From: Scyliorhinus canicula
Taxonomy: Eukaryota
Reading direction: 5' to 3'
Length of the DNA stretch: 64,000 bases
NCBI RefSeq assembly: GCF_902713615.1
Contig: NC_052167.1
Coordinates: 5,521,203-5,585,202 of the forward strand
Part shown: in pieces, positions 5,455 through 63,850 of the stretch
Numbering within the stretch: the first letter of the stretch is position 1
How the letters are laid out: every line of letters begins with the position of its first letter
The notes under the pieces: model-generated
The model's database searches: none
What the model was told of the DNA's origin: nothing
What the model saw: the letters and a program-made list of their open reading frames with translations, nothing else
Translations under genes and position numbers: made by a program

Positions 5455-5650
5455 GGGGCTGGTTTAGCACACTGGGCTAAATCGCTGGCTTTTAAAGCAG
5501 ACCAAGGCAGGCCAGCAGCACGGTTCAATTCCCGTACCAGCCTCCCCGAACAGGCACGGGAATGTGGCGACTAGGGGGCTTTTCACAGTAACTTCATTTG
5601 AAGCCTGATTGTGACAATAAGCGATTTTCATTTCATTTTCATTTTTCATT
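5455..5650 (+). mobile_element. Short tRNA-derived SINE (~190 bp) with (catttt)-like tail
   Basis: Head ggggctggtttagcacactgggcta, B box ggttcaattcc; near-identical copies elsewhere in window. Confidence 0.85.
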
Positions 5651-21557: not shown

Positions 21558-21730
21558 TGAAAATCGTTTATTGTCACGAGTAGGCTTCAATGAAGTTACT
21601 GTGAAAAGCCCCTAGTCGCCACATTCCGGCACCTGTTCGGGGAGGCTGGTACGGGAATCGAACCGTGCTGCTGGCCTGCTTAGTCTGCTTTAAAAGCCAG
21701 CGATTTAGCCGAGTGAGCTAAACCAGCCCA
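21558..21730 (-). mobile_element. Short tRNA-derived SINE
   Basis: Reverse complement of 5455-5650. Confidence 0.85.
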
Positions 21731-24335: not shown

Positions 24336-24503
24336 TGAAATGAAAATCGCTTATTGTCACGAGTAGGCTTCAATGAAGTTACTGTGAAAAGCCCCTAGTC
24401 GCCACATTCCGGCACCTGTCCGGGGAGGCTGGTACGGGAATCGAACCGTGCTGCTGGCCTGCTTTAAAAGCCAGCGATTTAGCTGTGAGCTAAACCAGCC
24501 CCT
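24336..24503 (-). mobile_element. Short tRNA-derived SINE
   Basis: Reverse complement of 5455-5650. Confidence 0.85.
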
Positions 24504-55227: not shown

Positions 55228-55267
55228 CTCATTTGTAGCAGTGGTTTTCCAAATGACACTTTTAAAA

Positions 55268-55444
55268 AATAATAATTAGAGCTTATTGTCACAAGTAGGC
55301 TTCAATTAAGTTACTGTGAAAAACCCCTAGTCATCACATTCCGGCGCCTGTTCGGGGAGGCTGGAATAGGAATAGAATAGGAACTGTTGGGCTTGTTCTG
55401 CTTTACAAGCCAGCTGTCTTAGCCCACTCTGCTAAACCAGCCCC
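55268..55444 (-). mobile_element. Short tRNA-derived SINE
   Basis: Diverged reverse complement of 5455-5650. Confidence 0.8.
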
Positions 55445-55445
55445 T

Positions 55446-55642
55446 ATTACTTTATTCCTTTATCAGAGTTACAAAGCCAGAGCTCAGAGTGTGAACAGGG
55501 GCAAACCCCTAATCCAGCTCCTTGCCAGCTCCAAAAACCAATTCAAATTCAGATTGAATCCAATTCATTGTCCCCACAAGACCAGATCCAGGCACTGAAC
55601 CTGAACTCACGCTCATCTTAGCCGAAAAGGCCGAGAAGCAAT
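55446..55642 (-). pseudogene. U2: Divergent full-length U2 snRNA-like retrocopy / U2-derived SINE
   Basis: 5' attgcttctcggccttttcggctaagat vs U2 ATCGCTTCTCGGCCTTTTGGCTAAGAT; ggacaat; Sm-like ggtttttggagc; SLIII-like ggagctggattaggggtttgcccc; begins exactly at U2 +1 beside a TSD. Confidence 0.85.
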
Positions 55643-55805
55643 CAAATGACTTCTTTAAACAAGTTTACGCTCCTCTTTTAACAAGAAACCCAGTGCAGGA
55701 TTTTACACCAACAACTTTCTGCCTTGACTCCTGTACAAACTGTTCACAATTGCTGTAACTCTCGATTCTCAGTCTGTGGGTGAAATTATACATTTGGGAG
55801 ACTAA

Positions 55806-56543
55806 GGGCGCGATTCTCCGCACTCCCGACGGTGCGGAGAATAGCGTGGCTCGTAAAATTTTACGGCCATGCTGTTCCGACGCCCTCCCGCTATTCTCCC
55901 CCCCCCCCCCCACGCCCGACCCCCGATACAAATCGCTGCCGCCGTTTTTTTACGGCCGGCAGCGATTCTCAGCTGATGGATGGGCCGAGTTCCCAGCCCT
56001 TTACGGCTGTTTTTACGAACGGCAAACACACCTGGTCTAGCCGTTCGTAAAAACGGCCGTAAACTGTCGATTTTTAAAACCATGGCACCGATTGGCACGG
56101 CAGCACCACGGCCGTGCCAAGGGTGCCATGGGCCCGCGATCGGTGGGCACCGATCGCGGGCAGCGGGCCCGATGCCCGCGCACTCTTTGTCCTTCCGCCG
56201 CCCTGCAGTATCCATTCGCGGGGCGGCTGAGGGGCATCCCGGCCCGCGCATGCGCGGATTTCGCGCAAATGCGCGATGACGTCATCCGCGTATGCGCGGG
56301 TTGGAGTCTTCCAATCCGCGCATGCACGGCTGACGTCATATGACGCGTCAGCCGGCGCTAACTCTGGCTATCGGGCTTAACGAAATTCGTTAAGCCCGCG
56401 ATGCCGGAGTTTACGGCGTCGGGATGCTAGCCCCGACCGGGGACCAGAATCGGTTCCCGGTCGGGAAGGGGGGGGCTGGCGTCAAACCCGCCCGGATTTG
56501 ACGCCAGCCTTACGATTTCTCCCCCTCTGGGAGAATCGCGCCC
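55806..56543. mobile_element. PIF/Harbinger MITE (family D)
   Basis: Perfect 14-bp TIR gggcgcgattctcc; canonical TAA TSD (55803-05, 56544-46). Confidence 0.92.
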
Positions 56544-61385: not shown

Positions 61386-61934
61386 CGATGCCTGTGACGT
61401 GCTTACATGTTTATTCTATATACTGTTGCTGAAAAGCATTGACCTTGAATATTTTGTGAATATTTAGTCCATTGAAGGTTTTTGTTGCAGATTTCTCTTT
61501 GTTTGCTATTTTAATGTAAATGTTGATTTGGTCCTTTGTTAAAGAACCCTTGATATTATTCATATGACTGCATGTTAGCACAGCGAGCCACCACTTTACA
61601 TTCAACAAAGAATAGACAATATTTGTGTACAACGCGTTTGAAAGGAAATTAAACAGCCACTGGAAATGCTATTTATTTCATTTAATTACTTCGATTCTTC
61701 ATTTAATTAGTGGGAATGTCTCTTAGCTCTTGCTTTAACCAACACTTTATTCATCTGATTCAACCAGTTTTCATTGAAGAGAAACACCCATTCTGTATTC
61801 TCTTTGTAATATACTCAACATACAAACTCGGCAGCATTTATTAAAGACTTCCAACTCTTTTGCAAACGGATGCTAAATTTGACAAGGATTTAAATCCACC
61901 TGATAAGATGGAAATAATAATTATCCTGACTATA

Positions 61935-62090
61935 GCTGGGCTTTTAAAGCAGACCAAGCAGGCCAGCAGCACGGTTCGATTCCCGTACCAGCCTCCCGGG
62001 ACAGGCAGCGGTATGTGGCGACTAGGGGCTTTTCACAGTAACTTCATTGAAGCCTACTCGTGACAATAAGCGATTTTCATTTTATTTCAT
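61935..62090 (+). mobile_element. Short tRNA-derived SINE (5' truncated)
   Basis: Matches 5483-5650. Confidence 0.8.
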
Positions 62091-62712
62091 GTTGAAGATG
62101 TTGGGTTGCGGGGGGGGGGGGGGGGGGGGCAACACGAAAAATACAATTGCTGGCTTGCTCCCACTGCCAGCAATGCGATACTGACCAAATAGTCTGGATA
62201 TTTGTGACAAAGTGGGAAGTAAGAGGGGTACCATCTTGGGGGTGGTGTGCGCTGCGCATCAAACAGGGAACCACCCATAAGGGGGTACAGCCCACTTTGT
62301 ACTGCCCCCTCCCCAGTCACGAATGAACCGCCCAGCGCCCCCCCCCCCCCTCCCTCCCCCCCAGCCAGGTTCCCAGATCCCTCACTGCCCCAAAGCTCCC
62401 AACTTACCTTAGTCTGGTATCTGTGACACGTCTTCTCAGGGACTCATATGTAGTTCCAGCAATAGCCACTACAGAGCTCTGGCGCTGCTGAGACCACTCC
62501 GCTGCTGGCCACAGCTCTCAAGGACAGGGCCTGCTTTCCCTGGAGGGCCAGAAGTCCCATTCTCACCTCATTAAGGTCACCCCCCCCTCCCCCCTCCCCC
62601 CCCCCCCCCCCCCACCCCAGTGTATTATTGCTGCATGGCAGCCTTTTTTAAAAGTCGTTCAGTTTGTGTCTGACTTTTCTGCCGGGGGTGTGGTGGGATG
62701 TGAACAAATAAG

Positions 62713-62875
62713 GGCAGGTTTGGCACAGGGCTAAAGAGCTGGCTTTTAAAGCAGACCAAAGCAGGCCAGCAGCGCGGGTTCAATTCCCGTACCAGCCTCC
62801 CCGAACAGGCGTCGGAATGTGGCGACTAGGGGCTTTTCACAGTCACTTAATTTGAAGCCTACTTGTGACAATATA
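62713..62875 (+). mobile_element. Short tRNA-derived SINE
   Basis: Matches 5455-5620. Confidence 0.8.
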
Positions 62876-63044: not shown

Positions 63045-63850
63045 TTTGATTTGATTTGATTTATTGTCATATGTACCAAGTACAGTGAAAAGTATTTTTC
63101 TGCGACCAATGGAACGTACACAGTACGTACATAGTAGACAAAAAGAATAATCAACAGGCAACATTGACAAATGGTACATCGATAAACAGTGATTGGTTAC
63201 AGTGCGGAACAAGGGGTCAAACAAAGCAAATACATGAGCAAGAGCAGCATGGGACTGGTTTAGCACAGTGGGCTAAATTGCTGGCTTGTAAGGAAGAACA
63301 ATGAAAGCAGCGCGGGTTAAATTCCCGCACCGGCCTCCCCAAACAAGCACTGCAATGTGGCGACTAGGGGCTTTTCACAAGTAACTTAATTGAAGCCTAC
63401 TTGTGACAATCAGCAATTATTATTATTATTATCAGAGGGCGTCATGAATAGTGTTCTTACAGGGAGCAGATCAGTCCGAGGGGGAGTCGTTGAGGAGTCT
63501 GGTAGCTGTGGGGAAGAAGCTGTTCCTATGTCTGGATGTGCGGGTCTTCAGACTTCTGTACCTTCTGCCTGATGGAAGGGTCTGGAAGAAGGCAATGCCT
63601 GGGTGGGAGGGGTCTCTGATAATGCTGTCTGCCTTCCTGAGGCAGCGGGAGGTGTATATAGAATCAATGTGGGGGTGGCAAGCTTGTGTGATGTGTTGGG
63701 CTGAGTTCACCACACTCTGCAGTTTCTTGCGATCTTGGGCCGAGCAGTTGCCATACCAGGCTGTGATGCAGCCGGATAGGATGCTCTCTATGGCACATCT
63801 GTAGAAGTTTGTGAGAGTCGATGCAGACATGCCGAATTTCTTTAGCTTCC
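63045..63850 (-). mobile_element. Rex1/Babar LINE 3' fragment with short SINE inserted (63251-63431, plus)
   Basis: LTNFYRCAIESILSGCITAWYGNCSAQDRKKLQ...LPSGRRYRSLKTRTSRHRNSFFP; (aaatc)n tail. Confidence 0.9.

Follow-up and report, generated by a model that had tools for sequence, protein, structure and literature searches.

The minus strand of the window, by which is meant the whole stretch of 64,000 nucleotides of Scyliorhinus canicula DNA that was analyzed, opens with ATTGCTTCTCGGCC when read from position 55642 to position 55445. The Rfam model for U2 snRNA (RF00004) aligns to this segment over model positions 1-192 with a score of 27.3 bits and an E-value of 0.0077. An earlier note on this DNA had described the segment as U2-like, full-length, and colinear with U2 from +1, and the alignment bears out that description. 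The Rfam search proposed in the same note thus returned an end-to-end alignment, but the score falls under the gathering score of 46 bits. The features of the locus are as follows.

55643 to 55656, minus strand: 5' target site duplication (TSD), aaagaagtcatttg, identical at 12 of 14 positions to 55250-55263 and A-rich at its start, as are the TSDs of other copies
55615 to 55642, minus strand: newest head layer, U2 nt 1-27 (5' end and stem-loop I; Rfam model positions 1-27), with a C3T substitution and an inserted C in the loop
55606 to 55614, minus strand: GAGCGTGAG, a diverged remnant of U2 nt 28-36 (branch-point recognition region)
55589 to 55605, minus strand: likely remnant of an older head layer, consensus GGTCAGGTGTAATGCCTG, with private changes in the window copy; the "stem IIa" of the earlier note
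55454 to 55588, minus strand: body common to all subfamilies, from U2 nt ~57-191 (Rfam and consensus alignments to shark U2)
55445 to 55453, minus strand: start of the tail, a private duplication of the terminal AAAGKAAT unit (alignment to the E-long consensus)
55264 to 55444, minus strand: unrelated, very abundant SINE nested inside the tail of the U2 element, with ATT repeats and a T run at its end
55250 to 55263, minus strand: 3' TSD, aaaagtgtcatttg

The first 28 nucleotides of the copy correspond to U2 nt 1-27 with one inserted C and one substitution, in agreement with the nearly identical stem I noted previously. In the consensus of subfamily E, to which the copy belongs (see below), the head is identical to shark U2 at 27 of 27 positions. 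The body includes a remnant of stem IIb with a private deletion of 8 nt and an expanded AATTTG/AATTGG tract. At the position of the Sm site is GGTTTTTGG (55531-55539), the counterpart that the earlier note had pointed out, and a hairpin derived from stem III, with the tip GGGGTTTGCCCC, is located at 55498-55509. The 3' part of the body is a degraded stem IV region with AAAGGAAT as its last letters. Three further claims of the note held as well. The branch-point recognition sequence is changed and the ~10 nt beyond it are absent; stem IV is poorly preserved, on which the Rfam alignment and the helix pair table agree; and the element was retroposed, as indicated by the 12/14 TSD and by a tail that is A/T-rich. 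The nested SINE separates the U2 element from its 3' TSD.

Relative to the E-long consensus, the window copy displays 10 substitutions in 188 aligned nucleotides (5.3%), the private 8-nt deletion, the 1-nt insertion in loop I, and the duplicated 8-nt terminal unit. No relatives with its private changes were observed, the 40 genome matches that were scored being only 84-90% identical, and the copy is without detectable progeny. The suggestion that it might be the master of a family is contradicted by its differences from the E consensus, by the nested SINE, and by the count of zero close relatives that carry its private changes. Very probably, what lies between 55642 and 55264 on the minus strand is a SINEU-like SINE of the long form of subfamily E, retroposed and now dead. 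There is every indication that the substitutions, the 8-nt deletion, and the nested SINE were acquired after insertion and that the copy is without recognizable function. By itself the locus is ordinary repeat debris, and the interest resides in the family.

Several other repeats lie in the neighborhood. The nested SINE represents a type of ~170 nt that starts with GGGGCTGGTTTAGCAGAGTGGGCTAA and has ATT repeats at its end. This type is matched 10 times within the 64-kb window, where further copies lie at about 5455-5622, 21568-21729, 24349-24502, 61934-62071, 62712-62873, and 63251-63430, and 30 times within 323 kb of fetched DNA. ARAGORN detected no tRNA in it, and no Rfam match was obtained in the stretch searched. 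A different repeat, ending in ...GGGAGAATC(G/C)CGCC, is positioned at ~55790-55900 on the minus strand, ~150 nt ahead of the window copy's 5' end; it also adjoins several 5'-truncated copies of the U2 SINE (the 5' flanks of L095, L101, L111, and L112) and is probably the terminus of a DNA transposon or MITE. Near-perfect palindromes at 56000-56063 (minus strand) and 56267-56350 (plus strand) are matched by plant miRNA families at 24-26 bits, the thresholds being 230-268, and are most likely inverted repeats of a transposon.

As a second alternative, the earlier note had proposed a U2-derived SINE family in the shark, and such a family of retroposed copies was indeed found. A search of the window's own genome (4.22 Gb) with an internal 34-mer, which extends from the Sm-like site to the 5' side of stem III, yielded 1,909 matches with three or fewer mismatches and 0 matches with a reversed-pattern control. 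The window element is therefore not the single copy for which the note had also allowed, there being about 1,900 or more interspersed relatives. A DNA search with the window element gave 2,629 first-look candidates in the genome, among which the 40 scored non-window matches show the above identity over ~195 nt and are dispersed on many chromosomes. In an alignment of 30 copies with their flanks, the similarity begins at ATCGC (U2 +1) and ends with ...GTAACTCTGATAAAGTAAT, after which there is an A-rich tail. The elements are 167-216 bp in length plus this tail, and about 10 of the 60 sampled copies are 5'-truncated or interrupted. With the Rfam U2 model, seven well-kept copies score 29-40 bits, all under 46.

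TSDs were located by a strict script in 43 of 61 full-length copies, and additional ones with two or three mismatches are visible by eye in several of those remaining. For the 40 TSDs that reach 10 bp or more, the median length is 14 bp. Immediately ahead of the TSD stands T in 20 of these, C in 12, G in 3, and A in 5. Positions +1 to +4 of the TSD are occupied by A in 19-26 of the 40, an A-richness that is partly inflated, as an A-rich tail cannot be cleanly delimited from an A-rich TSD. Insertion sites of this Y/AAAA-like type are the signature of nicking by an L1-type endonuclease. The flanks and TSDs of the copies are mutually unrelated, and no target specificity was observed beyond the Y/AAAA-like nick site. 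A search of the genome for L1 ORF1 (PF02994) provided four weak matches above the cut-off among 150 scored, so that remnants of an L1-type ORF1 are present. An intact partner LINE was not found; the one L1 ORF1-like locus that was opened is degraded and has no long ORF2.

The 5' ends of the copies are distinctly heterogeneous. Sixty copies, for which an exact match to the internal 34-mer was the sole criterion of choice, were classified with consensuses and fall into at least seven 5' architectures, designated A, B, C, D, D', E, and E'.

Subfamily A: U2 nt 1-27 (with GGCTCAGAT) fused straight to CTGGTATGTC..., with U2 nt ~28-58 deleted
Subfamily B: pristine U2 nt 1-42 upon an A element truncated at ~nt 8
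Subfamily C: U2 nt 1-38 upon an A element truncated at ~nt 12
Subfamily D: a head with the end GATCGAGCGTAGA upon an A element truncated at ~nt 5
Subfamily D': D plus a third head
Subfamily E (the window type): U2 nt 1-27, GAGCGTGAG, GGTCAGGTGTAATGCCTG, and the A body from GATCTGG
Subfamily E': E plus another head with the end CAAGCGTAG

E is the largest class in the samples, all of which were found through conserved words, and both subfamily shares and divergences are biased. The mean substitution divergence of the copies from their own subfamily consensus is 3-6% in every subfamily, with minima of 0.6-1.4%, values that are biased low by sampling. The family does not look recently active. Each of the subfamily-diagnostic junctions is common to 3-45 of the sampled copies. 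Because ~2,000 copies have diagnostic deletions, insertions, and substitutions in common, the family descends from dedicated source elements and is not a sum of independent retropseudogenes. Tails of the form AAT(T)2-8(A)n rather than AAT(A)n occur in about 40% of the copies and in every subfamily (for example L010, L020, L067, L074, L089, L090, and L102), and the E' tails have the form AATGGAT(A)n. Of the words taken from an E copy close to the consensus, DNA runs under two organism labels contain a fraction of 0.8-0.87. Runs guessed as RNA contain ~0.5 of these words, which may simply reflect SINEs within longer transcripts.

The non-A subfamilies (B, C, D, D', E, and E') are characterized by one to three stacked U2 5' segments, and individual copies have gone further. 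In L143, U2 nt 1-46 precede a complete E element within a TSD of their own. In L152 (G000:C21:59828091-59829039), six tandem heads of 36 nt, with the unit ATCGCTTCTCGGCCT[A/T]TTGGCTAAGATCAACCTT, lie ahead of a complete E element within one TSD, GGAAATAGGCA, the array being located about 220 nt upstream of the start of the E element. A mosaic copy, L154 (G000:C16:114504603-114507623), combines a B-type outer head with a body that has E-type diagnostic bases, which suggests recombination between subfamilies or template switching. The derived GAGCGT state is observed in both D and E, and its AGCGT core is also present in the extra head of E'. No U2 gene with the AGCG variant was found; only two genome matches lie in a U2 context, and both are B-type SINE copies. 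Because the variant is absent from the U2 genes, some heads appear to have been copied from SINE RNAs and not from U2 snRNA.

The hairpin that follows the head in E deserves comment. Its consensus aligns to U2 nt 25-42 without gaps at 13 of 18 positions (p<5e-5), in a register that was picked after seeing the data, and a gapped alignment to U2 stem-loop IIa has a p of about 0.01. The hairpin is likely an older, decayed head layer, with the homology of E nt 28-65 being ambiguous between the two registers. The earlier note had read it as a stem IIa of the form UUCAGG/CCUGGA, but that pairing carries private substitutions of the window copy, and the consensus aligns better to U2 nt 25-42. Derivation of the hairpin from the inner head of subfamily D was considered and rejected, the alignment having a p of 0.28, which is not significant. 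Also disfavored is a scheme in which E is the ancestral full-length form and A its deletion derivative, for the A body is nearer to U2 toward its 3' end and the E hairpin fits U2 nt 25-42. The layered-head reading is preferred over one with E as the ancestor, tentatively so as regards the sequence in which the events took place. The top head of D and E shows 0 changes in 27 positions versus U2, and there are several changes in the next ~10 nt of that same head. Two processes would fit such uneven divergence, namely homologous renewal of the 5' end, occurring repeatedly, and selection acting on nt 1-27 of the source copies. At least in part, repeated addition of U2 5' segments explains why a pristine 27-nt head accompanies a diverged body.

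For a comparison of structure, the canonical shark U2 (L031:1501-1691) served as the reference, and its helices were projected onto the consensuses of A, D, and E. Stem I is unchanged in the SINE consensuses. Stem IIb shows one or two one-sided changes that keep the pairing (C-G to U.G), and the tip of stem III shows a single one-sided change (G.U to G-C in A and E, and G-C to G.U in D). Three pairs of lower stem III are gone through an indel. In stem IV, 7 of 11 pairs are broken in A, and D and E are mostly gaps (two pairs broken and five gapped in E). The covariation check that the earlier note had advised thus gave no two-sided compensatory change in any helix of the A, D, and E consensuses versus shark U2. 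The covariation that it had reported at the stem III tip fails because its reference U2 came from another species; the shark's own U2 already has GGGGC-UU-GCUCC there. Similarly, stem IIb had been taken to be restructured, yet the shark U2 already contains GUCCC/GGGAC, and the GUCUU/GGGAC of the window copy is due to its private 8-nt deletion.

Measured against dinucleotide shuffles, the minimum free energy of genuine U2 has a z-score of -4.7; the z-scores of the SINE consensuses are -1.1 for A, -1.5 for B/C, -2.5 for E, and -3.1 for D. The Sm-like site reads GGUUUUUGG in all subfamilies, whereas shark U2 has GAUUUUUGG there; a canonical Sm site has the form R-A-U4-6-G-R. The A of the Sm site matters for assembly of the Sm core. 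The branch-point recognition sequence GUAGUA is not retained, and E reads GAGCGUGAG in its place. Outside of nt 1-27, the body is ~70-80% identical to U2, and it has GGGGACCAT and TTTTTGGAGCAGG in common with the canonical shark U2. The idea of a source RNA that was a structurally selected U2 variant with a new specificity finds no support, given the absence of compensatory changes, the weaker folding z-scores, and the loss of stem IV.

Genuine U2 genes are readily distinguished from these elements. At least 48 matches score 162-192 bits, and these genes lie partly in tandem arrays on C26 and C20. The loci referred to as L031-L060 (G000) are located at 215.9 and 217.4 Mb on C5, 80.9 Mb on C15, 130.0 Mb on C18, 74.9-75.06 Mb on C20, and 12.68-13.13 Mb on C26. 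They form three sequence classes, all at 162-192 bits, the first of which is canonical. The class in the C20 array has an altered segment after the branch-point region (AGTTTCTG), an altered 5' arm of stem IIa (TTTTCAG), and an altered Sm flank (TTTTTAGAGC), and it keeps the canonical proximal sequence element (PSE). The C26 class is a tandem array with a period of ~970 bp, contains GGCTCAGAT, and has altered stems III and IV; no PSE is seen at about -52, and a PSE-like TCACCGTAGACTAAAAGT is positioned near -100. The C20 and C26 class genes may be expressed variant U2 snRNAs. One 179.6-bit U2 match, L038 (G000:C6:126376210-126376400), is without an upstream PSE and is followed by a T run and another repeat. 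Rather than a gene, it is probably a U2 copy that was orphaned or retroposed.

Transcription of U2 genes relies on Pol II and on a PSE that lies upstream. In the canonical and C20-array genes of the shark, the PSE GCTGTAAAAGAGGGAAGG is present with 0-2 mismatches and starts at about -52 to -54, and the genuine genes also carry a 3' box-like AATTTCAAAG. In 77 copies of the SINE, no PSE with fewer than seven mismatches was observed between -90 and -15. This set takes in all 29 genome copies that contain an exact 49-mer of the E consensus; where their 3' ends are intact, these 29 copies have A- or T/A-rich tails, most with a recognizable TSD. Neither a source copy nor its promoter was found among the copies examined, and the PSE-bearing source locus sought at the suggestion of the earlier note was not encountered among the 77.

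In light of these data, three other explanations can be weighed. The copies could be retropseudogenes of one expressed, lineage-specific U2-variant snRNA gene, equipped with a Pol II promoter, a PSE, and a 3' box, and perhaps altered in function. Such a gene would account for copies that start exactly at U2 +1, for the identity of nt 1-27 to U2, and for the U-rich Sm-like site and the stem IIb and III hairpins present in every subfamily consensus; an external promoter is, moreover, the simplest route to a +1 start, U2 being without a known internal promoter (PMC4494074). We consider this explanation improbable. A PSE is found in 0 of 77 copies and deviates in the canonical genes by only 0-2 mismatches, and the exact 49-mer copies with an intact 3' end have tails and mostly TSDs. 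The family has lost its branch-point sequence as well as stem IV and the Sm-site A, and two-sided compensatory changes are absent. In addition, the stacked heads of the seven or more architectures can arise only by retroposition, and thus the new sources were themselves retroposed copies. The possibility that a functional variant U2 gene is represented by the window copy can be virtually dismissed. The PSE-like TTGTTAAAAGAGGAG at about -43 to -26 might be cited in favor of such a gene, but its alignment to the shark PSE core needs a gap, it lies ~10 nt too near to +1, and it is pre-existing target DNA directly upstream of the TSD. The TSD, the private indels, the SINE nested in the tail, the lack of a 3' box, and the score of 27.3 bits versus the threshold of 46 likewise speak against a functional gene.

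A third explanation invokes a Pol III SINE whose promoter evolved within the U2 sequence. In subfamily A, the head does contain TGGCTCAG, reminiscent of how an A box begins, and the loop of stem III contains GGTTCGCCCC, which resembles a B box; the two derived changes of A-D versus U2 go toward the A-box/B-box consensus. In many of the tails a T run also stands ahead of the A run, as is the case in polyadenylated "T+" SINEs. The runs TTTT in loop I and TTTTT at the Sm-like site, however, are present in every subfamily upstream of the putative B box and would terminate transcription, and E has reverted or is without both of the box-like changes (TGGCTAAG and GGTTTG). These features make a Pol III promoter very unlikely. 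Termination at T runs was also Kojima's argument against Pol III in the case of SINEU (PMC4494074).

The reading favored here, to which a probability of roughly 0.9 is assigned, is that the family is a non-autonomous retroposon derived from the shark's own U2 snRNA and amounting to about 1,900 or more copies. In the mechanism envisioned, an L1-type LINE enzyme would prime on the A-rich tail of RNA from a few source copies and reverse-transcribe this RNA at the nicked target. Upon reaching the 5' end, the enzyme would sometimes change templates and continue on U2 snRNA or on a different SINE RNA, and this switch would add or renew a head. Copies with a newly complete head may then have become new sources. 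Head renewal, possibly together with selection, would keep nt 1-27 identical to U2 while the remainder drifts. The T-run tails, found in ~40% of the copies, are not predicted by a simple poly(A)-priming model and count against this explanation, as do the failure to find a partner LINE and the lack of a source copy or promoter among the copies examined.

A more speculative proposal, and one that we regard as rather doubtful, is that U2 nt 1-27 constitute the selected functional module of a Pol II-type, promoter-poor class of SINEs that is convergent in sharks and crocodilians. If true, a regained U2 5' end is what makes a source copy, being needed for making or stabilizing the RNA or for reverse transcription, and the convergence between shark and crocodilian would extend to the same internal deletion and the same stacking of heads. 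For genome annotation, the practical consequence is that the ~2,000 sub-threshold "U2-like" matches in this genome are repeats and not snRNA genes or variants.

The closest published systems are the crocodilian SINEU families reported by Kojima in 2015, which are snRNA-derived SINEs and none of which was detected outside of crocodilians (PMC4494074). In the full-text literature searched, snRNA-derived SINE families are described only in that crocodilian paper, and none was found for sharks or other non-crocodilians. Shark subfamily A has the layout of SINEU-3. Both are derived from U2 only and consist of a ~30-nt 5' segment and a middle U2 segment with an internal deletion of 30-50 nt (PMC4494074), followed by a ~40-nt 3' end that is hardly recognizable as U2 and a poly(A) tail. 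The copy numbers are about 1,600 for SINEU-3 and at least 1,900 for the shark family. Unlike in SINEU-3, the 3' end of the shark elements aligns weakly to stem-loop IV, and the body carries shark-type U2 residues (GGGGACCAT), from which it follows that the family arose independently of the crocodilian SINEU. The insertion sites in the shark are also diverse and L1-like, in contrast to the Mariner target of SINEU-3.

With SINEU-1 and SINEU-2, the shark family shares recurrent additions of snRNA 5' segments, subfamilies with stacked heads, private 5' additions in individual copies, and the lack of a recognizable promoter. The stacked heads of SINEU-1/SINEU-2 were attributed to template switching (PMC4494074). 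Only U2 heads, and no U1, have been seen in the shark, however, and there is no foreign, non-snRNA 3' body. Whereas the crocodilian families were mobilized by Tx1-Mar with a preference for Mariner-N4_AMi, the shark copies display a non-specific L1-type nick signature. The processed U2 pseudogenes and snRNA/L1 chimeras of mammals are similar in their L1-type TSDs, template switching, and occasional poly(A), but these mammalian cases are one-off, independent events that are usually 3'-truncated and near-identical to U2 (PMC4494074). The genuine U2 genes of the shark are colinear with the SINE and identical to it over nt 1-27, and only the genes have the PSE, the 3' box-like sequence, and tandem arrays.

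The shark family displays the features of the SINEU class, namely a U2-derived 5' region, a length of <500 bp, poly(A) tails and TSDs, and recurrent 5' addition. Structurally it fits this class, though its target choice is different and its partner LINE presumably is too. The published snRNA-derived SINEs have so far come from one vertebrate order, and a second family is now at hand in a cartilaginous fish. The internally deleted, U2-only body, the stacking of heads, and the lack of a visible promoter consequently look like rules of the class and not like crocodilian accidents, and the shark provides a second system in which the spread of SINEs without a Pol III promoter can be studied. As compared with published descriptions, the shark family is a second member of this rare class, beyond the crocodilian ones.
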